The position numbers and the translations under genes were made by a program. Shown in pieces: positions 1 to 58,155 of a stretch of 64,000 nt of DNA (position 1 is the stretch's first letter; each line of letters starts with the position of its first letter). The notes beneath the pieces are model-generated. The model worked only from the letters and a program-made list of their open reading frames with translations, made no database searches and was not told where the DNA came from. Location of the stretch: IMG/VR virus record IMGVR_UViG_3300042540_001822, positions 62,001 through 126,000 of that record. One strand, 5' to 3'.

Positions 1-122
1 ATATAAGTGTTAGGTTGTGTCCAATCAATGGGGGAACCGTCTTTTGTGAGTTTTGAAAAATCACCAGTTGCTGTGATAATTGGATTGGTTCCAAAATTTT
101 CGAATAATTTAATGTGTTTCAT
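1..122 (-). CDS. Partial hypothetical protein with MKHIKLFENF leader (runs off the window)
   Basis: Read by hand: ATG at 122 gives MKHIKLFENFGTNPIITATGDF...; GATATATA motif upstream (139-146, minus); same leader as 177..551. Confidence 0.8.
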   Translation of the reverse strand, partial: MKHIKLFENFGTNPIITATGDFSKLTKDGSPIDWTQPNTY

Positions 123-176
123 TTTTTTGTTTTTTTTTTATATATCTAAATGTGAGGAAGAATTTTTGGTTGGTTT

Positions 177-551
177 CTATTTCAGATTCTTGGCAATAAC
201 TTCCCATTGATTTAAAATCTCTTCCATCATATTTGTGCCATTTTTCAAAATTGCGTAGTAGCATTCTTCATATCTCAGTTCCTCAAGATTCTCCTCCAAT
301 TCACTCACAGATTTAACCAAACCATGTGAAAGATTTTCCAAAAAATTTTCCCAATTTCTTTCAATGGGTGCATTGTTGTAGGATTTCACTTGTTCTAGGG
401 TTTTCTGCCATACAGATTCTTCTGCTTCTTGCAAAGTTAGAAAAGTTCCAACCGGATCTTTCTCACCCCTATATAAATTGTAGTACATAACAAGGAATGG
501 TCCTGAATTAGATGAAGCCCCAAAATTTTCGAATAATTCTACGTGTTTCAT
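177..551 (-). CDS. Hypothetical acidic protein with MKHVELFENF leader (putative head internal protein)
   Basis: ORF track; leader and upstream region near-duplicate those of the gene at 1..122. Confidence 0.75.
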   Translation of the reverse strand: MKHVELFENFGASSNSGPFLVMYYNLYRGEKDPVGTFLTLQEAEESVWQKTLEQVKSYNNAPIERNWENFLENLSHGLVKSVSELEENLEELRYEECYYAILKNGTNMMEEILNQWEVIAKNLK

Positions 552-617
552 TTTTTATTTTTTTTTTATATATCTAAATGTAAGAAAAAATTTTGGAGCA
601 AAAAAACCAAACCCCAC

Positions 618-644
618 AAAAAACCCGGTTTGAAGACCGGGTTC
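618..644. terminator. Intrinsic terminator hairpin (AACCCGGT-ttgaag-ACCGGGTT)
   Basis: Inverted repeat next to an A-run, downstream of 737..1153. Confidence 0.7.
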
Positions 645-736
645 TTAATTTTTGTATTTTAAAGTTTTGTTTTTTAATTTAAGTTCTCGTTAGCACTGCG
701 TATATACGCAAAACGTTATAAGTAATAAAACAAAAA

Positions 737-3022: not shown

Positions 3023-3409
3023 TTAAAGAATACCAGACCTAAAAAAGAAAGGATCCCCTGTTAGAATTCCTTGTGCCAAATTTCGTCTAATAATAAACGA
3101 TCCTTCTTCTAATGTCTTTACTTTCATTGGCGGGTATTCCAAATCATTAACCATTCTCAAAGGCATTACCATAGGCCTTGTTGACAACATGGTTTTTTCC
3201 CAAATATCAGAAATTAAAATTTGAAACCTTTCTTGGAGGTCCAAATTTGTGTCTTGAGATTCCAGTAAAAAGTTTAAACTTCTGATTGGACCGAAGTGTG
3301 AATTAACAAACGAAATAAGTGTTGGGCTTGGAGTTGATGAGATCATATAATTTTTTATTTGATCCAAAGGTAAAAAGAAAATTAAGGAATAAAAAATGAA
3401 ACCCCACAA
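3023..3409 (-). CDS. Hypothetical protein (start probably MISSTP)
   Basis: ORF track. Confidence 0.55.
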   Translation of the reverse strand: MWGFIFYSLIFFLPLDQIKNYMISSTPSPTLISFVNSHFGPIRSLNFLLESQDTNLDLQERFQILISDIWEKTMLSTRPMVMPLRMVNDLEYPPMKVKTLEEGSFIIRRNLAQGILTGDPFFFRSGIL

Positions 3410-3452
3410 AAAGGGCCAGACTTTTGCCTGGCCCTTGGAGGTGGAAGTCTGA

Positions 3453-4043
3453 TTACTTCCGGTTCAAACCAAGTCCTTGAAGAACCATGGTGTTGGTTGG
3501 GCGATTTTCCATGTGGAGAAAAGCCATGTCCAAAACCTCTTCTGACAGGTACCAACCATCAATCACCCTGGAAACAAATCCTGGGGATTTCTTGCAGATG
3601 TCAGAGATTGACTTGATGTCACCTCTCTGCAACCTTTGGTTGACAAAGGCAAGTTTGAAGGTGTACTTGTTGTACCCATTCATCTTTGACTTCTCCTTTG
3701 GCTTCCGGCCCCTTTTTGGGGTAGATGGAGCAATTGGGAAAAGGGTGGCAACTGGAGGTTCTGGAATTTGAACCTTGGGTTTCTCTGCCACCTTAACCAA
3801 TTTTGGTTTGCGAGCAGGCTTGGTGTCGAACTTCTTGATGGAACCTTCAACCTGGGACTTGGTGGATCTTTTGATCCTGCCTTTCAAACCCAGAATCAAT
3901 TTCCGGGAATAAATGGAGGTGAGGGTTCTGCCAAAGAAGTTGGCGATTTCCGCGGAGGAAAATCCTCCTGCGACCATGTTCTTCAGTTGGGTGTCCTGCT
4001 CAGGAGTCCAACGAGAATGATGGGTTTGGGGTCTTTTTGCCAT
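3453..4043 (-). CDS. Two-HTH DNA-binding protein (N-terminal Myb/GcrA-like HTH, C-terminal HTH)
   Basis: RWTPEQDTQLKNMVAGGFSSAEIANFFGRT; C-terminal RGDIKSISDICKKSPGFVSRVI resembles 31428..31631; start moved to MAKRPQ behind TATATTTG at 4086-4093. Confidence 0.65.
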   Translation of the reverse strand: MAKRPQTHHSRWTPEQDTQLKNMVAGGFSSAEIANFFGRTLTSIYSRKLILGLKGRIKRSTKSQVEGSIKKFDTKPARKPKLVKVAEKPKVQIPEPPVATLFPIAPSTPKRGRKPKEKSKMNGYNKYTFKLAFVNQRLQRGDIKSISDICKKSPGFVSRVIDGWYLSEEVLDMAFLHMENRPTNTMVLQGLGLNRK

Positions 4044-8973: not shown

Positions 8974-8996
8974 AAGGATATGTGGGTTTAATTGTG

Positions 8997-9069
8997 TGAT
9001 CCCGACTGGACTCGAACCAGTAACCTACTGCTTAGAAGGCAGTTGCTCTATCCATTGAGCTACGGGACC
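8997..9069 (-). tRNA. tRNA-Arg (anticodon TCT)
   Basis: GGTCCCGTAGCTCAATGGATAGAGCAACTGCCTTCTAAGCAGTAGGTTACTGGTTCGAGTCCAGTCGGGATCA folds as a cloverleaf with CTTCTAA loop and GTTCGA T-loop. Confidence 0.95.
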
Positions 9070-9667: not shown

Positions 9668-9825
9668 TACAGATGCATCACAATCAACTCTGGGTGGATT
9701 TCGGTACAGTTAATTAAGGATTGTATGTTTTTTAAACAATCATTTACTGTTTTTTTACCCAACATCTCTTTTGCCTTCTGGGAGGGAGAAAGTGCAGGCA
9801 AATCAAACAAAACAGATTGGCTCAT
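9610..9825 (-). CDS. Hypothetical protein
   Basis: ORF track; overlaps the sigma factor stop. Confidence 0.6.
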   Translation of the reverse strand: MSQSVLFDLPALSPSQKAKEMLGKKTVNDCLKNIQSLINCTEIHPELIVMHLYWIEVLKEVETKSNVGSAV

Positions 9826-10706
9826 AGACTTGGTTCAAATTGAATTCTTCTTGCTCCGGATTTCATTTTCGTGATCGCCTTACGGTGAATGATCTCTGCC
9901 TTCTGTTTTGAAATTCCAAATTTCAAACCAATTTCTATGTATGTCAATGGGTAATCATATCCCACTCCATGATGTAATGTCACGATGTCTTTTTCTAAAG
10001 GAGTTAAAGAAAGCAACAACTTATTAACCATCTTCTTTTCGTCATCCTTGTTCAACACATCTTCTGGTGTATCTTCACCGGAATCAATTATCTCATACAG
10101 GTTAGAGTCTTCTGCTGTTTCTAGGGGCTTGTCCAAAGAGACAGACACAAAATTTTGGCCTGTCACAAATTTAAAGGTATCAAAGGTTAGATTTTCTCTT
10201 TTGAGTTCTTCCTTCATGTATTCAAATACCTCCATCTCTGTGGCCTCCCTACCAATCCTAGCAAAAAGGTAACATTTCGCATCCTCTGCTTTTTGAACTA
10301 AACGTAATTGATTGGGCGGGATGTACACTGTTCTTTTAAACTTCTGTATGTAAAGAATCATTTCCTTTCGGATATGCCAAACAGCAAAGGAGATAAATCT
10401 AAATCCCTTGGTTGGATCAAATCTATCTGCTGCATCCACCAGCCCCACGTTGCCCACAGCCACCATCTCCTGCTGTGATTCTTCATTACTAGCATACATC
10501 TTGGCAACCGATAACACAAACCTCAAATTTGAGGTAACCAGCTTTTCTCTGGCTTTGGCATTACCATTAAAGGCCTGGGTGGCTATTTCGTATTCCTCAT
10601 CTGGTGACATGATGGGTATTCGGGATACCTCCCTCAAATACACCTGGGTTGAAAACTTCTGGCTGAGAGTAAATGTCTCAACTTTTTTAAATTGTCTCAT
10701 GCCCAT
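9822..10706 (-). CDS. Sigma-70 family RNA polymerase sigma factor (RpoD/RpoS-like, regions 1.2-4)
   Basis: YLREV, AREKLVTSNLRFVLSVAK, GLVDAADRFDPTKGFRFISFAVWHIR, region-4 HTH. Confidence 0.9.
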   Translation of the reverse strand: MGMRQFKKVETFTLSQKFSTQVYLREVSRIPIMSPDEEYEIATQAFNGNAKAREKLVTSNLRFVLSVAKMYASNEESQQEMVAVGNVGLVDAADRFDPTKGFRFISFAVWHIRKEMILYIQKFKRTVYIPPNQLRLVQKAEDAKCYLFARIGREATEMEVFEYMKEELKRENLTFDTFKFVTGQNFVSVSLDKPLETAEDSNLYEIIDSGEDTPEDVLNKDDEKKMVNKLLLSLTPLEKDIVTLHHGVGYDYPLTYIEIGLKFGISKQKAEIIHRKAITKMKSGARRIQFEPSL

Positions 10707-11489: not shown

Positions 11490-12870
11490 TTCGAATTTTA
11501 GAGGGTGTAAAACATACTATCTTAGCACCATACTATATCTATTGTTTCGATTTTTCGGGTCCACAGAGGACCTGCCCACAGGTACAGGACTTGGTGGGAT
11601 CAGTGACACAGGGGGTTTCGGGATTGGGGGACATCGGGAGGGGCTGGGATCCAAAGAGGGCCGAGCGGACTCTGGCCCATAGCCGCCGGAGTAGAGGGGG
11701 AAGTGGAGGAAAGTGGAACATGGGTATATTTTGTGTTGAGGCGCCGTGCGCGTCGCGTGCACGCGCTGGGCTTGAGTATGTTAGCATCATACTATGTCAA
11801 ACCCCAAAAATTTCACCCGGGCCCGGGGTACGTTTTGTTTGTTTCTGTCTTATCTTTGGATTGTGTTTCTCATATGTGTTTTGCCCGTGTCGGTCTCCGG
11901 ATCGGCACGGGATTTTTGTTTGTCCCAGATTTCCAGGATAATCTCAGCCCAACGAAAACCTTTCGTTATAACACAACATGTTTACTTAGAATGACTTACA
12001 AATCGTAACAACAAAAAAATTTACCGGGCGGGCTGACCCAGATTAACCTCGGACTAACCTCGGCCCATCCGGGGCGGAGTTAAATTGGAAATCCGGGTTA
12101 TCCTCCACAAGCCTCCACTTAACCCCACTTTTTACCACACGGAGGTGCTAGGAAAAAAAATCGAGGTTAGCGGGGATAAATTTGGGGACAACTGGGAGAA
12201 CTTGGTTAACCCCGCCCTACAGGGGTAAAACGAGGCTTTCCCGGACGATCGGGTCTGGACTCATGGCCCTGGGTGGTTTTCAAGGCCTCAGAGGGGCTTC
12301 CACAAGGGGGATTTTTCCGCGAAACCTTGAGGGCAGAGTCCTTTAAAGAATCCCTTTCTTCTTGTCTGTCATGTCTGGGCCAGGAGGGCCAAGGAGTCCT
12401 TTAAAGAATCCGATTCTTCTTTGTGATGTCTGGACCAAGGAGTGTCGGGAAGTCCTTTAAAGAATCCCTTTCTTCTTGTCTGTTATGTCTGGGCCAAGGA
12501 GATCCCTACAGTAACCTTTAGCTACCTATGTGTCTCCTTGTCTTCTTATATGTCTTTGATGTCTGGGCAGAGTCCTTTAAAGAATCCGATTCTTCTTGTC
12601 TTCTTGTATGTCTTTTATGTCTGGGACAGTAGATCTTTCTGAGTACGTGTGTCTTCTCTTGTGTGTTCTCTTTATACTTTGCATGTTCGGGTTAAAACAT
12701 GTTAGATGTGGTGTAGTCCTTCTGTGTCTCCTTGTTCGTCTGTGTGTTCTTTTCTTCATTCTTAAATTGACATTGGATTTTGTTCTTTTTTATTTGGAAG
12801 GGCCGGGGTTCTTTCTGTGTTCCCAATTTTGTCCCCCTCGATTTTTGAGGAACACGTTTGATGCAAATGA
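11490..12870. other. GC-rich non-coding strand-switch region (candidate origin, terminus or packaging region)
   Basis: Genes diverge on either side; no plausible ORFs; palindromes, phased CCAC repeats, iteron-like repeats and a strong T-over-A skew. Confidence 0.55.
12337..12600 (+). repeat. Four copies of AGTCCTTTAAAGAATCC(CT/GA)TTCTTCTT
   Basis: Copies start at 12337, 12395, 12451, 12571; palindromic CTTTAAAG core. Confidence 0.85.
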
Positions 12871-45992: not shown

Positions 45993-47027
45993 ATGGACAA
46001 TTTCAATACAAATCAAATTTCAACGGATGTTGAAAATTCAATTCAGAATTCAGAGGAAATAAAAATAATCGTTGTTTATCACACCTATTTGGTCAATCAA
46101 TGGAGGATTCAAGTTGAAGAACAGTTAAAAAGATTATATGATTCTGGATTATATGATGCAGCAGATAAAATTTGTGTTACTTCCGATTTAGGAGAAACCA
46201 CAAGAGAAGAGGCAATAGAATTTTTCTCTGCATTTCCAAAATTAGAAATTGAATTATCGGATCAAAATTATGGAGAATATTTAGCGATTAGAAAAGTAAG
46301 AGAACTATCCTTCCTCCATAAAAATGCTAAAATTTTGAACTTTCATACTAAAGGGATTTTCAACAATTGGATAACTTTTAATGGAAAAGAAAAATCTGAA
46401 AGAAAAATTAAAAATTCAAAAGCATGGAGATATTGCATGGAATATTTCACCATAGACAGATGGAGAGAGTGTGTTGAATTACTTGAAACTTGGGACAATG
46501 TTGGGGTCACGTGCAACGGAGGATGGTATTGGGGTAATTTCTGGTGGAGTTCATTCAAACACATCAGTAAAACAATAGAACCCCATCACTCCACCAGATG
46601 GACAAATGAAGCCTGGCTTAATTGTGAAATTCCAGACTCTAAAAACTTCGAGTTCTGGCATTTTGAAATTGATCCATTCCAATCCGAATTAAGGCCAGAA
46701 TTTTACATGGGGGGATTTGAGAAATACAAACAAGATAGACTAATAGTTAAATCTGCTTTATGGGGATCATGTCCTTTTGAAATAGACGAAGGTTATTCTG
46801 GTTACAAATTCGGAATTACTGAAGATGTAACAGAAAAAGTACAGGCTTCAATCGATCAAAACGGTGGAACGAAAATAGATTTCACAGTAGGGTTTAATTT
46901 TTTTAATACTGACCCTATTTTCGGTTATAGGAAATGTTTAGATGTTGAATTATATCCAGAAACAAATCCAAATTTAATTATTAGATTAGGACAAAGAGAA
47001 GGACACCTATTTAAATTCTCTTTTTAA
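45993..47027 (+). CDS. Putative glycosyltransferase-like protein
   Basis: FHTKG...WR..MEYF...GNFWW...R...EAW pattern; located in the glycosylation cluster. Confidence 0.55.
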   Translation: MDNFNTNQISTDVENSIQNSEEIKIIVVYHTYLVNQWRIQVEEQLKRLYDSGLYDAADKICVTSDLGETTREEAIEFFSAFPKLEIELSDQNYGEYLAIRKVRELSFLHKNAKILNFHTKGIFNNWITFNGKEKSERKIKNSKAWRYCMEYFTIDRWRECVELLETWDNVGVTCNGGWYWGNFWWSSFKHISKTIEPHHSTRWTNEAWLNCEIPDSKNFEFWHFEIDPFQSELRPEFYMGGFEKYKQDRLIVKSALWGSCPFEIDEGYSGYKFGITEDVTEKVQASIDQNGGTKIDFTVGFNFFNTDPIFGYRKCLDVELYPETNPNLIIRLGQREGHLFKFSF

Positions 47028-47057
47028 AATTTCTTTTGTGATTATCTACAAAATTAT

Positions 47058-48740
47058 ATGAAAAACAACTTTACAATTGTTACAGGATTATGGGATTTGA
47101 AAAGAGGAGATTTGGAAGGTTGGGCTAAAAGAGATTTCTCCTATTATAAATCTAAATTTTTTGAGTTACTCGAAACAGATGTGCCCATGGTCATTTGGAT
47201 TTCTGATGACCTAAGAACCGAGGTAGAGGAGGTGAGACAAGGGAAACCCACATCGATTCAAATTAAAAATTTGGAGGATTTTAAAACTTGGAATCCTTTT
47301 TTCCATCAAATACAAGAAATTAGAAATCGACCTTCTTGGCAAAATTTTGCAGGTTGGCTTCCAGAGTCACCACAGGCCGCTTTAGAATTTTATAATCCGA
47401 TGATGTTTGCCAAAATGTTCATGGTTAACGACTCTGCTATTTTAAATCCATTTAACACAGATTATTTCTTTTGGGTAGATGGGGGTTTAACCAACACGGT
47501 TCCTAAAGGATATTTTACAAAAGATGATGTTTTAAAAAATCTACCTAGATTTGTGATAAAACACAACGATAAATTTATTCAAATTTCTTATCCTTATACA
47601 GCAAACGAAGAAATACATGGATTTGAAAGGAAAGCCATGGCATCTTATTGTGGGGTTGACTATGTGAATTATGTTTGTCGTGGTGGGTTTTTTGGAGGTT
47701 CTAAGGAAAGAATACACGAGATCAATTCTCTGTATTATTCGATCATGTCTAAAACTTTACACGCCGGTTACATGGGAGCTGATGAGTGTTTGTTTACCAT
47801 CCTATCACACCAATATCCAGAGTTGACCCATCGTTTTGAGATAGAGGGAAACGGATTGGTGTGGCCTTTTTTTGAAGAACTTAAACATTACTCAGAGGAA
47901 AAGATAAAACTTGATTCGTCTTTTTTGAATCCTGAAAACTGTGGCTTATATGTAATTGGATTCAATAGTCCAAGTCAGTTTCAAACCTTAATTCAATCAA
48001 TGATGGATTATGATCCAGATTTCATCCGAAAGCCCATCAAAATTCTTTTGAATAATTCCACTGATTCCAGCACTACTCCAGAGTATGAAAAATTGTGTTT
48101 AGATTATGGATTCTCCCACGTGAAGATGGATAATCTAGGAATTTGTGGGGGTAGACAGTGGATAGCAGAAGATGCGGCAGAAAGAGAATTTGATTTTTAT
48201 TTTTTCTTTGAGGATGACATGTTTTTCTATCCAAAAGAGGGGGAAAGGTGTAGAAATGGGTTTAACCGTTTTGTGTCTGGATTGTATCAAAAATCTTTAG
48301 AAATTATCAAAGAAAACAATTTTGATTTTCTGAAGTTGAATTATTCCGAATTCTTTGGCGATAACGGTACCCAGTGGTCGTGGTATAATGTACCCCAGAA
48401 CATCAGAGAGAAATTTTTCCCAGAAAAACCTAATTTACCTAAAATAGGACAAGATCCCAATGCTCCTAAGACCGAATACAAAAATATTAGATCTCATAAA
48501 GGAATTCCTTATGTAAACGGTGATATCTATTATTGCAATTGGCCTCAAATTGTAAGTAAGACAGGAAACCAAAAGATGTTTTTAAACACAAAGTGGGCGA
48601 GGCCATACGAGCAAACTTGGATGTCCTATATGTTCCAAGAAATGAAAGATGGAAATCTGTACGCCGGTCTTTTACTTCTAACCCCCACTGAACACAACAG
48701 GTTCGAACACTACGACGGCAAGTTAAGGAAAGAAAGTTAG
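47058..48740 (+). CDS. HtrL/YibB-like glycosyltransferase fused to a second GT-A domain
   Basis: TIVTGLWD, NPFNTDYFFWVDGG, GGFFGG; second domain has FFEDD. Confidence 0.75.
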   Translation: MKNNFTIVTGLWDLKRGDLEGWAKRDFSYYKSKFFELLETDVPMVIWISDDLRTEVEEVRQGKPTSIQIKNLEDFKTWNPFFHQIQEIRNRPSWQNFAGWLPESPQAALEFYNPMMFAKMFMVNDSAILNPFNTDYFFWVDGGLTNTVPKGYFTKDDVLKNLPRFVIKHNDKFIQISYPYTANEEIHGFERKAMASYCGVDYVNYVCRGGFFGGSKERIHEINSLYYSIMSKTLHAGYMGADECLFTILSHQYPELTHRFEIEGNGLVWPFFEELKHYSEEKIKLDSSFLNPENCGLYVIGFNSPSQFQTLIQSMMDYDPDFIRKPIKILLNNSTDSSTTPEYEKLCLDYGFSHVKMDNLGICGGRQWIAEDAAEREFDFYFFFEDDMFFYPKEGERCRNGFNRFVSGLYQKSLEIIKENNFDFLKLNYSEFFGDNGTQWSWYNVPQNIREKFFPEKPNLPKIGQDPNAPKTEYKNIRSHKGIPYVNGDIYYCNWPQIVSKTGNQKMFLNTKWARPYEQTWMSYMFQEMKDGNLYAGLLLLTPTEHNRFEHYDGKLRKES

Positions 48741-48802
48741 ATTTTCATAATTCTTAATTTTAATTTAACATAATTTAACAATTCCGAAAATACATACACG
48801 GA

Positions 48803-49516
48803 ATGAAAACTCTTGTTATTTCCGACGTCCATATTGGATCCAAAGGTTGCTCCTCTGAGGAACTTCTTTATTTGTTGAAAGATCAGTCATTCCACCGTTA
48901 TATTTTGGTTGGTGATATTATCGATGGTTGGCTCTTCAAAAAATACAAAAGATTTACCTACGATCACGCTCGTTTAATTCGAAGATTTTTAAAACTCTCA
49001 AAAACAAAAGAAATCATTTGGATCGCCGGAAATCACGATGAATTTCTCAGAAAATATTTGCCTATGGAGTTGGGGAATATTAGAATTGTAGACGAATGGA
49101 TTGAATCTGGAATTTGGTTCTGTCACGGAGACAAATATGATGGAGTGGTTAAAATGAGGTGGCTTGCCCAATTGGGGGGATTGGGATATGATTTGGCAAT
49201 TGTCATTGATAGAACATTGAAAAAAATGGGATTCAAAAGATCTCTGTCTAAGTATTTAAAGGATAATGTCAAGGCGGCAGTTAAATTTATGACAGACTTT
49301 GAGAAAGAGATGGCGAGACAGGCCGAAAAAAGAGGTTGTCACACCGTGGTGTGTGGACACATACATAATCCAGAATTGAAGGAAATTGGCAAAATCAGAT
49401 ATATTAACACAGGGGATTGGATCGAAAACAACTCCTATCTGATTTTGAATAAAAATTATTGTTCCCTTTACTCCCATGGAAGAGAAATTGACAATTGTTA
49501 TTCCCTGCAAAAATGA
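48803..49516 (+). CDS. LpxH-like metallophosphoesterase (UDP-2,3-diacylglucosamine hydrolase family)
   Basis: SDVHIG, GDIID, GNHD, HGD, GHIH, NTGDW. Confidence 0.85.
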   Translation: MKTLVISDVHIGSKGCSSEELLYLLKDQSFHRYILVGDIIDGWLFKKYKRFTYDHARLIRRFLKLSKTKEIIWIAGNHDEFLRKYLPMELGNIRIVDEWIESGIWFCHGDKYDGVVKMRWLAQLGGLGYDLAIVIDRTLKKMGFKRSLSKYLKDNVKAAVKFMTDFEKEMARQAEKRGCHTVVCGHIHNPELKEIGKIRYINTGDWIENNSYLILNKNYCSLYSHGREIDNCYSLQK

Positions 49517-50183
49517 GGAAAAGTACATTTTTGCCACCCTGGAAAGTTTGGCCAGACAAAATATAGGATCCACCCAAATTTATCTGGCGGATGCTAATTC
49601 TACAGATTTAACTGTTTCTCGGGCCAAGATGGCTTCATTTCTTTTCAATTTGAATTTGAAAATCATTCCTGGTGGTAAGGTTGCAGAGGGTAGAAACACC
49701 GGAGCTTCAATGGCAAAAACCCCGTACGTTTTATTCCTTGATGCCGACGTTACTTTCACTCCACAAATGAATTTGAATTCTTGTGTTCAAAAAATGGACG
49801 GAAAAATCAAATTGATGTCTACAACTCCAGTTTCAAGAACAGAGGGAGATTGGAAGGCTGAAATTTTGTTTTGTCTCAACCGGTGGTGTACGATCTTGAT
49901 AAGTCAAAAAGAACCGTTCTCTGTGGGTTCTTTTACCCTAGTAGAATTAGAATCTTTTTGGTCAAAGGGTGGTTTTGATATAGAGGTAAAACACACAGAA
50001 GATTGGCTTTTTTCCCGTCAATTCGAACCCGGAGAGTTTTGCCTTATTCCAAATTTAATTACCCAGGATTCAAGACGTTTTAAAAGATTTGGTTACCTTA
50101 GAATGGCCAATCTCGTGATTCGAAATTGGAAGAATCGAAAGAACAGAGAACATTTTTTAAAGGAAGCAGGGTACTGGATTTGA
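49476..50183 (+). CDS. Glycosyltransferase family 2
   Basis: IVIPCKNEE, DANSTD, GRNTGA, FLDAD, TED. Confidence 0.88.
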   Translation: MEEKLTIVIPCKNEEKYIFATLESLARQNIGSTQIYLADANSTDLTVSRAKMASFLFNLNLKIIPGGKVAEGRNTGASMAKTPYVLFLDADVTFTPQMNLNSCVQKMDGKIKLMSTTPVSRTEGDWKAEILFCLNRWCTILISQKEPFSVGSFTLVELESFWSKGGFDIEVKHTEDWLFSRQFEPGEFCLIPNLITQDSRRFKRFGYLRMANLVIRNWKNRKNREHFLKEAGYWI

Positions 50184-50195
50184 GATATATAAAAA

Positions 50196-50822
50196 ATGAA
50201 ACATCTGATTCCATTTAGGATCTACGAATCCCAGAAGGCTTCAGGACTTACTCGAAGTCAAGAGGAATTCTTGAACAAATACACCGAAGAAACATGGTCT
50301 GTTAATCCATCGACCGGTCTGGTGGATGTTCAAGGGGATTTTTTTTGTTACGATCGAGGCCTGAAATCCCTGTCAGGCATATCGTTCGGACATGTGAGTG
50401 GGGATTTCTACTGTGGTAAAAACAAATTGGCCTCCCTAGAAGGATCACCCCAGACGGTGGGTGGGGGTTTCTATTGTCAGGGAAACGACCTGACCTCCCT
50501 GGAAGGAGCACCACAAGAAATAAATGGTCGATTTCTTTGTGATGAATTTGAATTAATCAAGGGTAAATGGAACATGCGAGGATGGCTGGAGGTTCTGAAC
50601 ACAGGAACTCCAGAAGACAAAAAATTGATTTCCACCCTTCCGTGGCTCCAACTGGACTGGTGGAACTTGGAACTCCAACGGGATCCAGGGAAAACAGTTC
50701 ATCTGTTGTCCACCATGTGGAATGACATGCCAAAGGACATGCAATCTGCAATCAAGATTCCTAAAGGATATGAAGGTGATTTTGAATTGTTTTCTGGATT
50801 TGACGAGCTGGGGTTGTTTTAA
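50196..50822 (+). CDS. LRR-like variable-module protein 13 (2 modules)
   Basis: Paralogue. Confidence 0.9.
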   Translation: MKHLIPFRIYESQKASGLTRSQEEFLNKYTEETWSVNPSTGLVDVQGDFFCYDRGLKSLSGISFGHVSGDFYCGKNKLASLEGSPQTVGGGFYCQGNDLTSLEGAPQEINGRFLCDEFELIKGKWNMRGWLEVLNTGTPEDKKLISTLPWLQLDWWNLELQRDPGKTVHLLSTMWNDMPKDMQSAIKIPKGYEGDFELFSGFDELGLF

Positions 50823-50836
50823 AGGATATATAAAAA

Positions 50837-51589
50837 ATGAAACATCTGATTCCATTTAGGATCTACGAAGCACAGACTACTTCAGGTCTTACGAAGAGAC
50901 AGGTTAAATTCTTAAACAAATACACAACTGGAGCCTGGTCTGTTAATCCAACGACAGGTTTGGTGGATGTTCAAGGGAATTTTTTTTGTTATTATCAATA
51001 TCTGAAATCCCTGTCAGGCATATCTTTCGGTCATGTAAATGGGAATTTCAACTGTAACACCAACCAACTGACTTCTCTGGAAGGAGCACCAAATACGGTG
51101 AGTGAAAATTTCGTTTGTTTCAACAACCGGCTGACCTCCCTGGAAGGAGCACCTCAGACGGTGGGTAATTATTTCGATTGTTCCCTCAACCAACTCCAGA
51201 CCCTGGAAGGAGCACCTCAAAGAGTGGGTGATAGTTTCGATTGTTCCAGAAACGAACTCCGATCCCTGGTAGGAGCACCTCATACGATAAACGGGGATTT
51301 TCTTTGTGACGAATTCAAATTAGATCCAGGCAAATGGAACATGGAAGGATGGCTGGAGGTTCTGAACACAGGAACTCCACAAGCCAAAAAATTGATTCTC
51401 ACCCTCCCATGGCTCCAACCGGACTGGTGGAACTTGGAACTCCAAAGGGATCCAGGTAAAACAGTTCATCTTTTGGGGTCTGCATGGAACCATATGCCAA
51501 AGGAAATGCAATCTGCAATCAAGATTCCTAAAGGATATGAAGGTGATTTCGAATTGTTTTCTGGATTCGATGAGTTGGGCTTGTTTTAG
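50837..51589 (+). CDS. LRR-like variable-module protein 14 (4 modules)
   Basis: Paralogue. Confidence 0.9.
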   Translation: MKHLIPFRIYEAQTTSGLTKRQVKFLNKYTTGAWSVNPTTGLVDVQGNFFCYYQYLKSLSGISFGHVNGNFNCNTNQLTSLEGAPNTVSENFVCFNNRLTSLEGAPQTVGNYFDCSLNQLQTLEGAPQRVGDSFDCSRNELRSLVGAPHTINGDFLCDEFKLDPGKWNMEGWLEVLNTGTPQAKKLILTLPWLQPDWWNLELQRDPGKTVHLLGSAWNHMPKEMQSAIKIPKGYEGDFELFSGFDELGLF

Positions 51590-51603
51590 AGGATATATAA
51601 ACC

Positions 51604-52335
51604 ATGAAACACATACTACCCTTTAAGATCTACGAATCACAATCAATGTCTTCTAGTTTAACACCACAGCAGGAAACTCTCTTGAATTTTTGTACAAAAA
51701 AAGGAAAATGGAGCGTGAATCCAACAACAGGTTTGGTGGACATTAATGGTGATTTCAAGTTGGCCTCAGATATGTTTATCCAAAATGATCAACTTCACAT
51801 TAAACCAACAAAAAGTTTTTTAGGAATCAGATTTGGAAATGTCGATGGGAAATTTGATTGTGTCGGCAATGAACTCCGATCCTTGGAAGGATCACCGCAG
51901 AAGGTTGGTGGAGAATTTTGGTGTTACAGAAACAATCTACAATCCTTGAAAGGAGGACCACGAACGGTTGGTGGAGGTTATGCATGTCAATTCAACGAAC
52001 TCCAATCCTTGGAAGGAGCACCACTGGAGGTTGGTGGTTTGGGATTTCAGTGTGATGAATTCAAATTAGATAAGGACAGTTGGAACTTACGGGGTTGGAT
52101 AGAGGTTTTAGAAACAGGAACCAAAAAGGCAAAGGATCTGATCAAGACCCTGCCCTATCTCCAACCGGACTGGTGGAACTTGGAACTCCAACGGGAACCT
52201 GGAAAGATCGTTCACCTGCTGGCACAGGCGTGGAAACACATGTCTGAGGACTTCAAATCTAAAATTGAGATTCCCGAGGGATATGAGAATGACTTTGGTT
52301 TCTTTTCTGAATTTGATGAGCTGGGGTTGTTTTGA
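51604..52335 (+). CDS. LRR-like variable-module protein 15 (3 modules)
   Basis: Paralogue; ends SEFDELGLF. Confidence 0.88.
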   Translation: MKHILPFKIYESQSMSSSLTPQQETLLNFCTKKGKWSVNPTTGLVDINGDFKLASDMFIQNDQLHIKPTKSFLGIRFGNVDGKFDCVGNELRSLEGSPQKVGGEFWCYRNNLQSLKGGPRTVGGGYACQFNELQSLEGAPLEVGGLGFQCDEFKLDKDSWNLRGWIEVLETGTKKAKDLIKTLPYLQPDWWNLELQREPGKIVHLLAQAWKHMSEDFKSKIEIPEGYENDFGFFSEFDELGLF

Positions 52336-52346
52336 GATATATATAA

Positions 52347-52745
52347 ATGTTAAAATATAATTTAATATTCATGAAATCTTCCAACCTTTATACAGCTTAC
52401 TTGGATTTTATCAACGAAGCTGCCAAACCAGAAGAAAGTTTTGAGCAATTTTGCAAAAATAGACTGGCAGGAGCCACTAAAATTACAGAAATGGCAAAGA
52501 AAAAAGGAGGTGATGCTCTATTGACTTTCCATCATTTCGAAGTTAAACTTCCAATTTATTCTAAAGCTTCAACAGGTAAATTTAAATTGAGCGAGGCCAC
52601 CACCAAATTAGATTCATTAGTTTCCAAACTAAATCAATCTCTCTCCACCACTGGCGAAATTAAAATGACTCAGGTCCAGTTTCAAAAATTGGTGGGTTTG
52701 ATTGAGGTTTGGGGAGAATTGATAATCAGATTCAAACAAAAATAA
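52347..52745 (+). CDS. Hypothetical protein with ...YLDFINE leader
   Basis: ORF track. Confidence 0.7.
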   Translation: MLKYNLIFMKSSNLYTAYLDFINEAAKPEESFEQFCKNRLAGATKITEMAKKKGGDALLTFHHFEVKLPIYSKASTGKFKLSEATTKLDSLVSKLNQSLSTTGEIKMTQVQFQKLVGLIEVWGELIIRFKQK

Positions 52746-52749
52746 AATC

Positions 52750-53250
52750 ATGGGAAAACACATTCGAGGATTAAATGAATTCGATGATTTTTCGGATCTA
52801 GATTCACTTATAGGGGGATTCGAGGAGCTAGGAATTACCAGCGTTTATGGGTGGGCTTTTCAGTGGGACAGCACGACCGAAGTTCCATTGGTTGAAATTG
52901 TAATTTCTTCTACTGCTAAGGAAGCTCTAGATATTTACTCCAAATATGGTTGGTTTTCGGAAGATGTTAGTTATATGATGGAATCCAGCAAACAAATAAA
53001 AACCATCTCGGACGTTTTCGACAATTTGGTTAAACAAAAAGTTATTTTTAACTCCAAAATCATATATGATCTTCGTCCTAAACAGGATTTGCAAATTAAA
53101 ACTGCTTATATAAAAACTCAAAGGAATAATCCATTTGAAATCACGGAAGTATTAAACACATATTTTACCAACGCGGAGGAAGTTTACAGAAAAACTTTCA
53201 TGCACCGAGGTTCTGCAGGTTTTGCAGGTGGACCTTTGATTAATATTTAA
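52750..53250 (+). CDS. Protein with N-terminal LIGGFEELG motif
   Basis: MGKHIRGLNEFDDFSDLDSLIGGFEELGI. Confidence 0.75.
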   Translation: MGKHIRGLNEFDDFSDLDSLIGGFEELGITSVYGWAFQWDSTTEVPLVEIVISSTAKEALDIYSKYGWFSEDVSYMMESSKQIKTISDVFDNLVKQKVIFNSKIIYDLRPKQDLQIKTAYIKTQRNNPFEITEVLNTYFTNAEEVYRKTFMHRGSAGFAGGPLINI

Positions 53251-53255
53251 AAGAT

Positions 53256-53861
53256 TTAGTTCTTTTTTGCTTTTGCCTTCTTTGCCTGCTGATAAAGACT
53301 CTTATCGTGCATTTTTGTTGTTTTTCCACCGGTGATAAAAGAATTCACTCTTGCGTGTGCCCACTGGTCAGGTGTTGTTCCTGGACGATGTCCAACTTTC
53401 CAGGCCGCCTTTCCGCGTTTAAAAACTTGCTTCAAGATTCCAAGAGGAAATCCACTTTTTTCTGCTTTCTTTTTTAAAGCTTTATGAGCGGGGGAACCAG
53501 GAGAGCTAACTGAACCGGCTGCAGATCCCTCGTCCAGCGAATCCCAATCTTCACCAGATTCTTCTAGTTCAAGAAAAACTTCATATGCAGCTTCTTCAAT
53601 TTCTGATCCGAATTCTTCATATACAATTAAATTAGATTCGTATGAAACCTCTTCGCTTTCACCAAACATTTCCTTGTATTTTTTCGTGTATTTGCTTTTC
53701 TTAGTCTCAACTTTTTTACCTTTACCTGCCTTCCTACTTTTATAATCGGCATCCCAAGGACCATATGCGGAGGAATCTGAGTCCGGCTTGTCCTTATGTT
53801 TTTGGATTTCTCTCTTCATCACTTTTGGATTTTTACTCAGATACTGTTTCGGAATTTTCAT
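53256..53861 (-). CDS. Basic phage protein, DUF5824-like
   Basis: ALKKKAEKSG...RGKAAWKVGHRPGTTPDQWAHARVNSF. Confidence 0.6.
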   Translation of the reverse strand: MKIPKQYLSKNPKVMKREIQKHKDKPDSDSSAYGPWDADYKSRKAGKGKKVETKKSKYTKKYKEMFGESEEVSYESNLIVYEEFGSEIEEAAYEVFLELEESGEDWDSLDEGSAAGSVSSPGSPAHKALKKKAEKSGFPLGILKQVFKRGKAAWKVGHRPGTTPDQWAHARVNSFITGGKTTKMHDKSLYQQAKKAKAKKN

Positions 53862-54303
53862 GAATATTATTATTTTGATTTAATTCTTCAACACAAAAAA
53901 TCTCTTCTGTGTTAAAATTTTGGGGAATACTGGGTTCTTTTTCTTTCATCTTTCTGGCCACAGTTAATTTCTCATAGATTGTTTGAATTTCTTCGTAGGT
54001 AAGGTTGCTTTTCTTCGAGTTGATATCAACTGTACAGGATACGACGTTTCCTTCTATATATCCTTGGTCAGAATCAATCCGATCAAAAGATCTTGAAAAT
54101 TGTCCTTCCTCTTCGAATCTACGCCCTGTGTAATAGCAGGTTGGATGGGAAAGTAATTCTTTAACTGTTTGAAAGCTGAGATCGAAATGCAGACCTCGGT
54201 CCTGTGCGCTCTGAAAGATTTTTAACATCTTTCGGGCAACTTCTAAATCGGTAATGTGGGAGGATCTGTGATGTTTGTGGGTTGGTTTTCTTTTTCCTTT
54301 CAT
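53833..54303 (-). CDS. HNH-like endonuclease-fold protein
   Basis: CYYTG...SFDRIDSDQGYIEGNVVSC...N..K. Confidence 0.65.
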   Translation of the reverse strand: MKGKRKPTHKHHRSSHITDLEVARKMLKIFQSAQDRGLHFDLSFQTVKELLSHPTCYYTGRRFEEEGQFSRSFDRIDSDQGYIEGNVVSCTVDINSKKSNLTYEEIQTIYEKLTVARKMKEKEPSIPQNFNTEEIFCVEELNQNNNIHENSETVSE

Positions 54304-54320
54304 GGTTGAAGTTTGTTCTC

Positions 54321-55538
54321 CTATATATCAGGAAAGAGAACACTTCTGATTCGCGGGATTGATCCCCAGCAAGTTGTATAGGGCGGGGTTAGAAAATCAC
54401 GTCTCATCTGCCAATCTTGGGATGTCGGTTCATTAACCTTCCTAGACTGGATGGTATCACGCCACATTTCGATTTGCTCCTGCCCAGATGTTGTCAAATC
54501 GCCCAAATAAACTCCTCCCTTTCGGTATTTAATTTTGGAATCAAACCCACCAATAAGCAACTGCTGAACAGAAGCCCAAATTTGATCATCATTGTTGGTT
54601 CTGGATAGAAATTTGTGGGAAAAACTTTTGGAATAGTAAAAATTATCTTTGTGTGGGTCGTTTGCAAGAAAAAGAACAACATATCCGGCGGACAAACCTT
54701 CAGATTTCAATTTTGTCACCACACTTTTCGTGTACAGTTCAATGGCCTTTTGCACCTCGTCAAAATTGCGGGTTCCTCTTCCAAATGTACGTGAAGTGGA
54801 AATATTTTTTCTTCGTTTGAATTTTGTCTCTACATCGTGGCATCTCATCCCAAGAAGTTCCTTGTGAGTTCGAAGTCCCACCACGGTCATATTTTTTTTC
54901 ACCCACTCCGGTGACAAAGACATAAAATCATGAACACTAGAGCATCCAACCTGATTCAATTTGATTTCGCTTTGCCTACCTATTCCCCATATATCAGAGA
55001 GAGCAATTTGGCGACCCTGTTTTTGAAAAAATTCACCGGAATCTTTCATGAAATAAATTCCGGAGGAGTCTTTGGCCATTTTGTTGGCCACCTTGGCCAA
55101 AGTCTTGGTGGAAGCTACACCAATAGAAATGGGAATTCCCGTCCAACGTAAAACCTGGGATCTGACGTGGGTTAAAAAATTTTCCATCTCAGAAGGATCC
55201 ACGTGATCTAAATTCATGAATACCTCATCGATAGAATAAATCTCAATGTGTGGTATAAAAGTTCGGATTGCTTCAACCACTCTCTCTGACATGTCTGCAT
55301 ACAAAGTGTAGTTGGAGGACAGAAGAACAACTCCTTCTTTTTGAATAAGATCTCTAATTTTAAAAACCTTCTGTCCCATCTTGATGCCTAATTTTTTGGC
55401 CTCCGGTGATCTAGCAATAGCGCTTCCATCATTGTTGCTGAGAACCAATACAGGTTTTCCTCTCAAAGAAGGATTAAAGACTCTTTCACAGGAAACGTAA
55501 AAGTTATTACAGTCCGCAAGTCCAATCCAACGGGTCAT
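54321..55538 (-). CDS. umuC: Y-family DNA polymerase V subunit
   Basis: DCNNFYVSCE, LSNNDG, SSNYTLY, YSIDE, TKTLAKVAN, WQMRR..LTPPYTT.W. Confidence 0.92.
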   Translation of the reverse strand: MTRWIGLADCNNFYVSCERVFNPSLRGKPVLVLSNNDGSAIARSPEAKKLGIKMGQKVFKIRDLIQKEGVVLLSSNYTLYADMSERVVEAIRTFIPHIEIYSIDEVFMNLDHVDPSEMENFLTHVRSQVLRWTGIPISIGVASTKTLAKVANKMAKDSSGIYFMKDSGEFFQKQGRQIALSDIWGIGRQSEIKLNQVGCSSVHDFMSLSPEWVKKNMTVVGLRTHKELLGMRCHDVETKFKRRKNISTSRTFGRGTRNFDEVQKAIELYTKSVVTKLKSEGLSAGYVVLFLANDPHKDNFYYSKSFSHKFLSRTNNDDQIWASVQQLLIGGFDSKIKYRKGGVYLGDLTTSGQEQIEMWRDTIQSRKVNEPTSQDWQMRRDFLTPPYTTCWGSIPRIRSVLFPDI

Positions 55539-55849
55539 GTTCTTTTAGTTCTTGTGATTACACCCCAATGTTCTTCTGGATTTCCCTCTCCAAATCGGTA
55601 TAAAACAAAGTGTCCCAATTCTGTTACCCCCACGCACATCTGACCTTCTTTTGGTTCTACCTTTCTATTCACCTCTATAATGTCTCCAGTTGTGAACTGG
55701 CCATAGCTAATTCCTCCGCCAACCCTAAAGAAGAAGGTGAAGTAAGGGTCTGGACCTAGAGGATAGAAATAGAGCCTATCTTGAACGTAATCTGTTGCGG
55801 GAGAAGAAAATCCAGTAGTTTTGGTTTTAACTTGGGCGAAAGATTCCAT
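55535..55849 (-). CDS. Degenerate UmuD-like protein
   Basis: GFSSPATDY and GDIIEVNR; coupled to umuC; catalytic Ser/Lys motifs not evident. Confidence 0.7.
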   Translation of the reverse strand: MESFAQVKTKTTGFSSPATDYVQDRLYFYPLGPDPYFTFFFRVGGGISYGQFTTGDIIEVNRKVEPKEGQMCVGVTELGHFVLYRFGEGNPEEHWGVITRTKRT

Positions 55850-55972
55850 CTGGTACAGAACAGCCTCAAATATAATATATACTCCTTGTTATCCATAATA
55901 TTTTTCACTTTTAGCTTTGATATATAAAAAAATAACTCAAAACCTCCTATTGACTTCCAAAAAATTAAATCT

Positions 55973-57199
55973 ATGCAGAATTTAATCTCCTATTCTTCTT
56001 TTGTTACTCAAAATGGATTGCTAGAATCTGAACAAATCAACGAGGAAATTATCGACCCAAATAAAATTCTGGCCGGACAAATTATAAAATTACCAAACGG
56101 AGAAACACACACGGTTCAGAAGGGAGAAACTCTTTCATCAATAGCTAAAAAATATGGAACTTCAGTTTCAGAGTTAGTGAAATCCAATTCACAATCTAAA
56201 TCAAATAAGCCAGAAAAATCCGATTCTAAAAGTGGTTCGAAGGGTAATTTAGATCCAGATAAAATCTTGGTTGGACAAATTATAAAATTACCGAATGGAA
56301 AAACACACACGGTTCAGAAGGGAGAGACTCTTTCGGGCATAGCTAAAAAATATGGAACCACCGTCCAGGAATTAATGGGCTCAGAATCAAATAAAAAAAG
56401 CGGTGAAAAAATTTCACCCAAATCTTCACCAGGTAATACCTCGTCAATCAAGACTTTTATAAGTTCAAAAGTTGCTCCTGAATTTAAATCTAAAATTGAT
56501 TCTGGAAAAATAGATTCTTCTGCTTCTAAAAAACTTATGCAAGTTAAAACCACAAAATGTGCCGATTTTGTTAACAAATTCACAGACACGGTAAGTTATG
56601 TAGGAGATGCCTGGATGGCTAAGGCTAATGAAGATATTGGTCCGTTTGTTTATAATGTTTTTGACAAATTGACCAAGACAGAACAAGATGATGCCATTAA
56701 AATGTGGCAAGAAATTCACGATCGCTCTCCTCGCTATTCTATAACTGATATTTTTAAAAAAGAAAAAATAAAATGGGAAGATTCTGGACCTCTTGCTGAT
56801 GAAATAAAATCATTTATTCAAAAATTAATTGCCAAAGATCCTTTGAACTCTGGAACTTTGAAATTAGATGATATTGTTGGAATTTATTTTCCTCCTTCCA
56901 GTCATCATGAAGAGGCTTTTTATGAAGGAGGGAAAAATTGGTTTACTGATAAGAATGGAAAGAAAGGGGAAGGAAATATTCCAGGTAAAACAATTAGGAC
57001 TGGTGAAGGATGGGGTATGAACACACACCTTGGCATAGTTGGAGCTATCAAAAACGGTAAACCGATTATTTTCCACAATATTCCTGCAAGCAAAACAGAA
57101 GGGCAAGTTTGGGCAGATCCAGTCGATAAAATTCAGGGTGGAGGCAAGATAGTGTGGGCTAGGAGACCTAAAACAGCAGGCAATCCTTTAGAAATTTAA
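55973..57199 (+). CDS. Double-LysM protein with putative C-terminal peptidase/amidase domain
   Basis: HTVQKGETLS.IAKKYGT.V.EL twice; CADFV...THLGIV suggests a Cys/His pair. Confidence 0.75.
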   Translation: MQNLISYSSFVTQNGLLESEQINEEIIDPNKILAGQIIKLPNGETHTVQKGETLSSIAKKYGTSVSELVKSNSQSKSNKPEKSDSKSGSKGNLDPDKILVGQIIKLPNGKTHTVQKGETLSGIAKKYGTTVQELMGSESNKKSGEKISPKSSPGNTSSIKTFISSKVAPEFKSKIDSGKIDSSASKKLMQVKTTKCADFVNKFTDTVSYVGDAWMAKANEDIGPFVYNVFDKLTKTEQDDAIKMWQEIHDRSPRYSITDIFKKEKIKWEDSGPLADEIKSFIQKLIAKDPLNSGTLKLDDIVGIYFPPSSHHEEAFYEGGKNWFTDKNGKKGEGNIPGKTIRTGEGWGMNTHLGIVGAIKNGKPIIFHNIPASKTEGQVWADPVDKIQGGGKIVWARRPKTAGNPLEI

Positions 57200-57207
57200 A
57201 AATATTT

Positions 57208-58155
57208 ATGCAACACTTGACAAATTTTTCCAGGTTTACTTTTTTACTGGAAAATTCATCTGGAAAAGAAAAAGAAAATTCAGTAAACTCCTCTTACGAG
57301 AAAAGATTCTCTTGTATTCCAAAAAAAGTTTTACCTTTTGTGGTAAGTGTGGCAAAAGATGTGGAAGGTTTCAAACAAAAATTGGGCGTAGATCTTCCAA
57401 ACTTAATTTTATTAACTAAAGCCACGGTTGGAATTATGGGAAGAGAAACACAATTTGGGAATTATTCAGAGATTACTGATATAGCTTCAGAATTTGCCCG
57501 TGAGGAGTTGGATTTAGGGCCTGTTATGGATTGGGGATTAAAAACTTTCTCTACAAAAACAGGTAAAAAAGTAACTCAAAGTTTGGGGATGGGACAAATA
57601 ACTCCAGAATTTTGGTCACGGTACAATTTAGAAAAAAAAATCGGTTTGTATGACGAATCTTTCGATGCTGAAAGTCAAGGACTAGCTGTTTTATATGGTT
57701 TAGCAGACAGATATAAATTGGGTTTACAAAAAGGTCTTAAGAAACAACCTTCCGTTAATCCTGTGTTACAAAAATATGGTTTAATTACTGGAATTAAAGG
57801 CACCGGAAATAATGCTTTAGACTTAGCCATCCTCGGACACAACATGGGAGAAAAAATTATGACTTTGTGGTGCAAAACCGATCATCCTTTGTATGCAGCA
57901 CCCAAAGAAGCAGGCCCAAAGTATAGTCCATTCCAAAACAAGGAAAGTTTTAATCCGAAAGGTAAATTACTTGCTAAGATTCAGGACCCTAGCCTGAAAA
58001 AATTTCCAGGAGAATTAACAGTCAAATTGAATGAGGTTATCCCGAATTTTTTCCCTAATTTGAAGGGCCCAGGTCATACCGCAATAGGTTACGTGGAGAA
58101 AGTTGCCAAGTATATGAAAAAGTTTTCTTGTTTAGACAGTTTAGGCACTAAATAA
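57208..58155 (+). CDS. Putative lysozyme/SLT-fold protein with leader
   Basis: IMGRETQFG...SLGMGQI...HN...YVEKV. Confidence 0.5.
   Translation: MQHLTNFSRFTFLLENSSGKEKENSVNSSYEKRFSCIPKKVLPFVVSVAKDVEGFKQKLGVDLPNLILLTKATVGIMGRETQFGNYSEITDIASEFAREELDLGPVMDWGLKTFSTKTGKKVTQSLGMGQITPEFWSRYNLEKKIGLYDESFDAESQGLAVLYGLADRYKLGLQKGLKKQPSVNPVLQKYGLITGIKGTGNNALDLAILGHNMGEKIMTLWCKTDHPLYAAPKEAGPKYSPFQNKESFNPKGKLLAKIQDPSLKKFPGELTVKLNEVIPNFFPNLKGPGHTAIGYVEKVAKYMKKFSCLDSLGTK

Follow-up and report, generated by a model that had tools for sequence, protein, structure and literature searches.

The window analysed here is a stretch of 64 kb, bases 62001–126000 of the 219,475-bp IMG/VR virus record IMGVR_UViG_3300042540_001822 (35.8% GC); coordinates are those of the window unless a genome handle is given. 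By our own open reading frame (ORF) calls, about 33 genes of the window and 55–70 of the whole 219-kb contig encode proteins that begin with a leader peptide of 11–19 residues of the type MK-x-(L/I)-x-x-F-x-x-(L/I)-x-E, and leader genes extend past the window on both sides. The original prediction, made from the letters alone, had read these leaders as capsid-targeting sequences (CTSs) like those of bacteriophage T4 and had put the number of leader proteins at more than 30, which is borne out. Its description of the carriers as unrelated proteins was overstated, as all-against-all BLAST places about two thirds of them in two paralogous groups; the remainder includes non-homologous proteins.

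Family A (20–22 members, 17 in the window, mostly in three tandem arrays) consists of leucine-rich repeat (LRR) proteins, and family B of about 15 small proteins for which the leader and a second motif, GF(D/E)(E/D)LG(L/I), are the main common traits. The original prediction had noticed neither this motif nor that the main family is made up of LRR proteins. The leader is also found on a LysM protein, a RimK-like ATP-grasp protein, an adenylate kinase (the domain of which begins only at residue 28) and several orphans of 111–643 residues, so that it is more than inherited paralogy. LysM and lytic enzymes had both been named as carriers: the LysM protein has the leader, but the GH19/PG_binding endolysin (58951–59835, −) lacks it. 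The leader genes and the sites of the upstream octamer GATATATA that are referred to below are as follows.

177–551 (−): orphan of 124 residues, leader MKHVELFE; GATATATA at 567–574, 15 nt upstream; no Pfam family
12892–14322 (+): orphan of 476 residues, leader MKRIKLFESFVAE; GATATATA at 12869–12876; no match in Pfam, PHROG or phage records (tblastn)
14429–20810 (+): first array, eight family A genes in tandem (14429–15247, 15263–15886, 15904–16716, 16732–17544, 17560–18384, 18400–19278, 19296–20171 and 20187–20810), each with an 11-residue leader, 3–7 LRR units and the C-terminal ELFSGFDELGLF
19240–19328 (+): example of a gene junction, with the last 12 codons (C-terminal motif), stop, AGGATATATA, 5–7 nt, ATG and an 11-codon leader
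24741–25319 (−): orphan of 192 residues, leader MKSFTEFKLNE, the closest to MKTFKEF of T4 internal protein I (IPI)
25529–28963 (+): second array, with family A genes at 25529–26410, 27002–27754 and 27770–28963 (12 LRR units) and a family B gene at 26425–26997
29072–30970 (+): three related genes for proteins of 203–218 residues (29072–29728, 29709–30362 and 30359–30970), leader followed by GFE(D/E)LG
30994–31329 (+): gene for 111 residues, leader MKHLANFLLFE
32634–33458 (+): family A LRR gene; GATATATA at 32592–32599
34146–36077 (+): protein of 643 residues, leader MQFNLQKFSDFVWQRILE; GATATATA 4 nt upstream
36091–37638 (+): three family B genes (36091–36600, 36620–37120 and 37135–37638), with leader, acidic linker, SLISGFEDLGI and alpha/beta domain
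40011–41986 (+): two divergent family A-like genes with the C-terminal motif, 40011–41201 (leader MENRILNFSDFILE; GATATATA at 39998–40005) and 41216–41986
50196–53250 (+): third array, with family A genes at 50196–50822, 50837–51589 and 51604–52335, a gene for 132 residues at 52347–52745 and a family B gene at 52750–53250
55973–57199 (+): LysM protein with two LysM domains; the leader closes with LLE at residue 18
57208–58155 (+): orphan of 315 residues, leader MQHLTNFSRFTFLLE
59848–60384 (+): tail-fibre-like gene (Mtd_N domain) without leader; GATATATA at 59848–59855

The leader, its upstream octamer and the two main families

The leader opens with Met, usually followed by Lys, and closes with (L/I)-x-E; around position 4 it has a hydrophobic residue and around position 7 a Phe. 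Its length has a mode of 11. For counting, we used a regular expression that describes an aromatic/hydrophobic N-terminal pattern closing in (L/I/V/F)-x-E within 11–19 residues. It matches 33 genes of the window, of which about seven are doubtful (starting at 737, 1187, 9290, 21303, 22060, 22490 and 43084), while about seven clear leaders fall outside it (177–551 on the minus strand and those at 26425, 29072, 30359, 37135, 52347 and 52750). The third residue before the predicted cut (P3) is Leu (22) or Ile (9) in 31 of the 33, and the residue after the Glu (P1′) is Ser or Ala in 19 of the 33; a small P1′ together with Leu or Ile at P3 matches the specificity of T4 gp21, which cuts after Glu (PMC5694885). 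The expression matches 16.9% of N-termini compared with 4.8% of internal-Met decoys, a 3.5-fold difference. With a position-specific scoring matrix built from the leader of the LRR family, 33 of 371 non-family N-termini score above the 99th percentile of internal decoys, where 3.7 are expected, and the common MK start accounts for part of this excess. Two small paralogous families alternate in tandem at 20911–22882 (+), one starting with MNTPVSFELAKLLKEK and the other carrying EFVPYEQALALKELGFDEPC, with more copies at G000 42081–42802; their weak leader match is probably not a true leader, as GATATATA is missing there.

Orthologues were compared in two relatives, the complete genome G003 and G005, a 230-kb contig with 76% PolB identity. 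The leader pattern is kept in 33 of 41 orthologue pairs. In the orthologue sets of the RimK-like protein, the adenylate kinase, a 177-residue protein and a 312-residue protein, the residues before the Glu vary freely and those directly after it are conserved (RELPD; ADGFGT or SDGFGT; GGAAI), a conservation boundary that fits a propeptide removed by a cut at this position. Among copies within the contig, differences lie mostly at third codon positions, both in the tail (0.19 versus 0.09/0.02) and in the leader (0.30 versus 0.20/0.13). Paralogues of the LRR proteins in the 735-kb huge phage LR756501 start with peptides of the MIKTFKLYE type, which suggests that the leader may be widespread in the huge-phage group.

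The octamer GATATATA occurs 25 times in the window (1.33 expected; none of 100 shuffles reaches 25) and 50 times in the contig, 39 of these within 40 nt upstream of a start. Its association with the leader has an odds ratio of 12.4 in the record (p = 1e-11), and of 12.4, 8.0 and 7.1 across three genomes. The claim that the leader genes usually have this promoter motif is fair, since about 22–24 of the approximately 33 in the window have the octamer exactly or with one mismatch. In G003, GATATATA is the most upstream-enriched 8-mer (50 of 75 sites), and in G005 it precedes the genes for the portal (PHROG, E = 5e-59), the tail tube, a head-closure-like protein, a virion structural protein and the protease-scaffold protein. 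The tail-fibre genes of both relatives, including the orthologues of the Mtd_N gene listed above, also have it upstream, and its presence at the Mtd_N gene indicates that the motif serves an ordinary structural gene in the window as well. The classical structural proteins have GATATATA upstream but no leader, so that the leader is not shared by late genes at large.

The distance from GATATATA to the ATG is bimodal (4–5 nt and 14–30 nt), which argues against a role in ribosome binding; the spacing is exactly 4 nt at about a fifth to a quarter of the sites. At the fifth base past the octamer, 79% of 133 sites in the contig, G003 and G005 have an A. No upstream positions are conserved and a −35 element is lacking; a conserved AT-rich octamer of this kind in front of structural genes is what a T4-type late promoter looks like. 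This A is probably the transcription start, which would make the 4-nt class leaderless mRNAs. The 401-residue ORF of the first family A-like gene has its true start at 40011, 5 nt past GATATATA.

The proteins of family A are built from the leader, a conserved N-cap, 3–12 LRR units of 22 residues, an 85-residue helical domain and the invariant tail ELFSGFDELGLF, which runs to the stop codon. Among the 95 units of 22 residues that were counted, the x positions of xFxCxxNxL have entropies of 3.1–3.7 bits and the scaffold positions 0.3–0.7, as is usual for an LRR binding face that has diversified. Pfam LRR_4 is reached with 28.2 bits (cut-off 27) in a 397-residue member and stays below the cut-off in another. 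The AlphaFold model (AF2) is a solenoid with an overall pLDDT (predicted local distance difference test) of 90.9, in which residues 1–14 are disordered and lie outside the fold, and LRR structures rank top in Foldseek; family A has the tandem repeats (20–29 residues, LxxLxLxxN-type core) and the predicted solenoid by which LRR proteins are recognized. Within the arrays the junction DNA is nearly identical, with only 12–15 nt between genes. The LRR paralogues of G005 have the same leader and a different tail. Megablast of the LRR array against phage records gave no match. An LRR protein of the Vibrio phage VB_VaC_SRILMA (195 kb; 3330–3965) is 55% identical to family A over the repeats and has neither the leader nor the tail motif.

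In family B, the sequence SLISGFEDLGI stands 10–15 residues behind the leader and is followed by an alpha/beta domain. The fold is modelled confidently and the leader with low confidence; the model of the domain has no match in the PDB, and a word-index protein search returned matches from the same lineage only, none of them named. Families A and B have the motif GF(D/E)(E/D)LG(L/I) in common; it lies either C-terminally or close behind the leader. It is found 36 times at protein ends in the contig and is absent from G003 and G005; this absence and the different tail of the G005 LRR proteins mark it as a lineage-specific short linear motif, which probably docks both families to a common partner. 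A role as cleavage site was considered and ruled out, as Glu has no fixed position in it. More speculatively, it might mimic clamp-binding or SSB-tail peptides, or resemble the ESGFAG stretch in the scaffold of the relatives.

The source record, its relatives and their head genes

The replication genes of the record include a helicase, an exonuclease and a PolB that is split into two genes about 20 kb apart (G000 202484–204055 and 181894–183060, both on the minus strand and outside the window), the N-terminal half matching positions 109–495 of PHROG 262 and the C-terminal half positions 483–839. No capsid, portal, tail or protease genes and no gp55 homologue were found on the 219-kb record, and its longest ORF has 821 residues or less; the missing structural and protease genes, together with the lack of any ORF above 821 residues, identify the record as a fragment of the genome of an uncultured freshwater huge phage. 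An alternative genetic code, which might have accounted for the absent large genes, was ruled out, as ORF lengths and stop usage fit the standard code. The genome exceeds the record, since a JGI (Joint Genome Institute) contig of 231,101 bp from the same phage reaches at least 10 kb past the left end of the record; this contig runs about 30 kb further and carries DUF2201, MoxR-type AAA, ClpB-like and glycosyltransferase genes. Near-identical DNA was found in lake and freshwater metagenomes from 17 studies.

The nearest named relatives by PolB are the huge phages of Al-Shayeb et al. (2020), with identities of 39% for LR756500, 34% for LR756501 and 29% for the Lak phages. Many IMG/VR contigs are closer. 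Four of them, with 69–70% PolB identity, are complete or nearly so (348–434 kb, terminal repeats in three), and the complete relatives (373–434 kb) are distantly T4-like in their replication and head genes.

Pfam Peptidase_S77 scores above the cut-off in all five large relatives examined, directly upstream of a T4 Gp23-type major capsid protein (E = 1e-40). The protease of one relative also scores on Peptidase_S80, and a profile of the protease domains matches T4 gp21 (PDB 5JBL). At two places where the crystallized 5JBL chain has Ala, the relatives conserve His and Ser, which would be the catalytic residues, mutated for the crystal. Protease and repeat scaffold form one ORF of about 655 residues (G005 51463–53493; G003 50884–52854), of which the protease makes up the N-terminal third. 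In the scaffold, a 14-residue unit of the type YSEYLAENxDxxIx is repeated about 17 times; each copy has Y-L-A-E or, in a few, V-A-E or L-G-E, and a conserved ESGFAG stretch comes after the last of them. With (L/I)-x-E at 2.7 times its expected frequency, the repeat part looks like a scaffold built for chopping at this site. The capsid protein of G005 starts with MKLINE followed by AEI. Homologues of T4 gp55 were found in G003, G005 and G001 (E = 1.4e-6 to 1e-4). A sigma-70 family factor with regions 1.2, 2 and 4, encoded in the window at 9822–10706 (−), is separate from this gp55-type late sigma factor.

Interpretation of the leaders

We read the leaders as capsid-targeting propeptides of the T4 type. 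The proteins that bear them would be expressed late and taken into the prohead, where the leader would be removed by a cut after the Glu; we assign this reading a probability of roughly 65%. A short N-terminal peptide outside the fold, as in a CTS, is indicated by the length of 11–19 residues, by the family A model and by the late start of the adenylate kinase domain, and at sequence level the (L/I)-x-E end is present in 31 of 33 leaders and coincides with the conservation boundary. What stands of the original prediction is this likeness to the T4 CTS with its (L/I)-x-E site, to which the gp21, gp23 and gp55 homologues of the clade and the octamer at the structural genes of relatives can be added; its appeal to unrelated proteins is not supported.

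Late transcription would depend on GATATATA as a promoter of a single element, recognized by a gp55-type sigma factor, and would probably start at the A five bases downstream, and many mRNAs would be leaderless or nearly so. The leader would carry the protein into the scaffolding core of the prohead, where a gp21-type protease would cut after the Glu of (L/I)-x-E and leave the mature protein in the head. The cargo would comprise about 20 LRR proteins with hypervariable binding-face positions, about 15 small proteins, the RimK-like ATP-grasp protein, the adenylate kinase, the LysM protein and orphans. Late timing, targeting and cleavage are what we infer here; injection of the cargo with the DNA would be a further step beyond the propeptide reading. 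By analogy with T4 gp22, gp67 and gp68, which are core or scaffold parts that get degraded, some leader proteins may belong to the scaffold or core and be degraded instead of injected.

Several observations weigh against this interpretation. The evidence for protease, capsid and gp55 genes comes from relatives with 69–76% PolB identity, and none of the three lies on the contig. Independent cases are far fewer than genes, because much of the count consists of paralogues with an inherited leader, and the background of the regular expression (4–5%) implies that some single cases are due to chance. One subgroup of family B has no Glu in its leader. Depletion of (L/I)-x-E in mature cargo, which the protease might leave as a footprint, is seen in the contig (0.77 versus 1.08) but not in G005 (1.25) or G003 (1.11). 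Metabolic enzymes such as the adenylate kinase and the RimK-like protein are unusual as head cargo. A search for RNA runs or proteomes containing the sequence, which would bear on late timing, cleavage and packaging, found none. Finally, copy number and order of the array genes are uncertain in this short-read assembly, because the arrays break into small unitigs in four lake data sets, where contigs split the array into pieces of 120–460 nt and branch at the junction, leaving 19288 into another paralogue.

The enzymes of ordinary metabolism also lie at the root of an alternative that we judge unlikely, namely that the leader is a real and selected tag with another use (a different assembly site or compartment, a chaperone, the membrane or degradation) on proteins that are not packaged in the head. 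That the RimK-like ATP-grasp protein and the adenylate kinase carry it would then be less surprising, the search for proteomes yielded no virion data, and the second motif is a precedent for short docking peptides in this lineage. Such a tag, however, would not be expected to resemble the T4 CTS in sequence, length and terminal (L/I)-x-E, to co-occur with a promoter motif that serves structural genes, or to show the sharp change of conservation at the Glu that is expected of a cleaved peptide, in a clade that has a matching protease and a scaffold full of L-A-E sites.

The near-identical DNA of the array junctions suggests another explanation, somewhat less probable again, in which the shared ends are a by-product of cassette duplication or recombination, or are initiation signals of near-leaderless mRNAs, and the peptide itself is functionless. 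The DNA junction (3′ end, promoter and first codons) would be copied or gene-converted between neighbours. The short intergenic distances, the branching of the lake-run assembly graphs at the junction and the GATATATA sites 4 nt from the ATG, where the first codons could affect initiation, are all compatible with this, and Repoila et al. in 1994 reportedly described T4 internal-protein loci as shuffled via their conserved flanks. It does not explain why differences between copies are concentrated at third codon positions, why non-homologous proteins show the same pattern in other codons and with untranslated regions of 14–46 nt, or why orthologues keep the amino-acid pattern while the residues change; recombination accounts for the spread of the leader, but not for its (L/I)-x-E ending.

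Chance, with loose patterns catching the K-, F-, N-, I- and E-rich N-termini of an AT-rich genome, is very improbable: although the loose expressions match 4–7% of internal Met positions and 27 of 409 shuffled N-termini, and window matches such as those at 21303, 22060, 22490 and 43084 are doubtful, the excess of N-termini over decoys by both the expression and the scoring matrix, the tight link to GATATATA and the conservation in orthologues contradict it, and it can explain only a minority of single cases.

If the leaders are CTS-type propeptides, a wider picture is possible, which we advance tentatively: a diversified head library of about 20 hypervariable LRR binders and of enzymes, marked by T4-type leaders and GF(D/E)(E/D)LG, that would be injected as an arsenal against host defences or for takeover. 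The junction of tail motif, promoter and leader would then act as a cassette border that lets the library expand and shuffle.

Other features and comparison with known systems

Several further features were noted. Directly upstream of the first leader gene of the plus strand (12892), a GC-richer region of about 1.3 kb (11500–12880) has no convincing ORF and contains 4–5 direct repeats of approximately 26–46 nt (core AGTCCTTTAAAGAATCC) at a spacing of about 57 nt; it could be an iteron-like or regulatory region. Between leader-gene arrays, the opposite strand carries a T4 Rnl1-type RNA ligase and a 2-oxoglutarate–Fe(II) (2OG-Fe(II)) oxygenase (38058–39940, −). A cluster of glycosyltransferase-like genes lies at 43304–50183 (+; Pfam GlcNAc, Glyco_transf_34 and HtrL_YibB), flanked by further candidates, and a UmuC-type Y-family polymerase at 54321–55849 (−; IMS, IMS_C and DUF4113), with a 104-residue gene without a Pfam match upstream in the UmuD position. 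The thymidylate synthase at 61996–63126 (−) has 376 residues and matches the whole 266-position Pfam profile, so that about 110 residues are insertions. The window has one tRNA-Arg with anticodon TCT (8996–9069, −; ARAGORN and Rfam). The record also encodes, beyond the window, a family of 18 proteins with about 100 residues each in tandem runs (G000 47792–61048, 138387–140014 and 149114–151384); its members start with MTIAQQIKWDFKTNG, contain repeated hairpin-like NGxxIYxEN units and end in GEKFKLVKV.

CTSs, gp21, internal proteins and the late promoter are already known from T4, as is extensive processing of head proteins from phiKZ-like giants; in the literature searched, no paper was found that connects huge phages with a capsid-targeting sequence. 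The new elements are the scale, with 55–70 candidates in an incomplete genome, the arrays of hypervariable LRR proteins as candidate cargo, the putative second docking motif, the predicted protease-scaffold fusion and the promoter word with a probable fixed start base. Should the leaders work as in T4, the head-packaged proteins of this phage clade would far outnumber those proposed for any other phage, and much of the cargo would be built on a repeat scaffold with the variability of an immune receptor. It would bear on the purpose of the many extra genes of huge phages, suggesting that part of them encode proteins delivered ready-made at infection. Leader, cut site and late promoter word, the last probably with a fixed start base, provide testable rules by which the virion cargo of uncultured huge phages could be annotated from sequence, and the leader might be usable as a portable packaging tag.

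The closest known system is that of T4, where leaders were taken from AF158101: IPII and IPIII start with MKTYQEFIAE|A and IPI with MKTFKEF...ITE|A, the cut being expected after ITE at residue 19, and MKHIQSFSLFE|A and MKSFTEFKLNE|I of the record can be set beside them. Both are MK peptides of 10–19 residues with aromatics three apart and (L/I)-x-E followed by a small residue, on otherwise unrelated proteins, and both go with a single-element AT-rich promoter, late in T4 and putatively late here; the matching gp21-type protease, gp23-type capsid protein and gp55-type sigma factor are found in relatives within the clade. T4 has well under ten CTS proteins, compared with about 33 leader genes in 64 kb and 55–70 in the 219-kb fragment here. 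The T4 cargo consists of small basic proteins instead of LRR arrays and enzymes, and its promoter word is TATAAATA instead of GATATATA; the second shared motif and, in the relatives, the fusion of the protease to a repeat scaffold in an ORF of about 655 residues are further differences. Function of the CTS is documented for T4 (PMC8442874, PMC3012670, PMC5694885), whereas that of the present leaders is predicted.

The phiKZ-type giants (phiKZ, 201phi2-1 and SPN3US) have many head and ejection proteins and gp175/gp245-type proteases that are related to gp21 and cleave after Glu (PMC5694885). Like the present phage with its candidate cargo, they are large and have many head-internal proteins and paralogous families with conserved N-termini. 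Their motif is (S/A/G)-x-E or A-x-E, most of their propeptides exceed 100 residues and 8–19 proteins are processed, whereas the leaders described here are as short as those of T4, have Leu or Ile at P3 and are several times more numerous as candidates. The internal-protein loci of T-even phages, where anti-restriction cargo such as IPI* stands behind a conserved CTS and has been read as an arms-race repertoire (PMC3012670), share the conserved leader and flanks and the variable bodies. They hold unrelated small ORFs at one locus; here the genes are tandem paralogues of one LRR scaffold, hypervariable within the repeats.

The LRR domains of the injected bacterial effectors SspH1, IpaH and YopM and other short-repeat LRR binders, also solenoids of 20–22-residue repeats, are among the best Foldseek matches of family A, in which the variability lies mainly at the x positions of xFxCxxNxL. 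These matches are weak (E ≥ 5e-3, TM score 0.3–0.4) and reflect the generic LRR fold only. Family A has no E3 ligase or other effector domain, and its delivery would be by the phage head instead of a secretion system.

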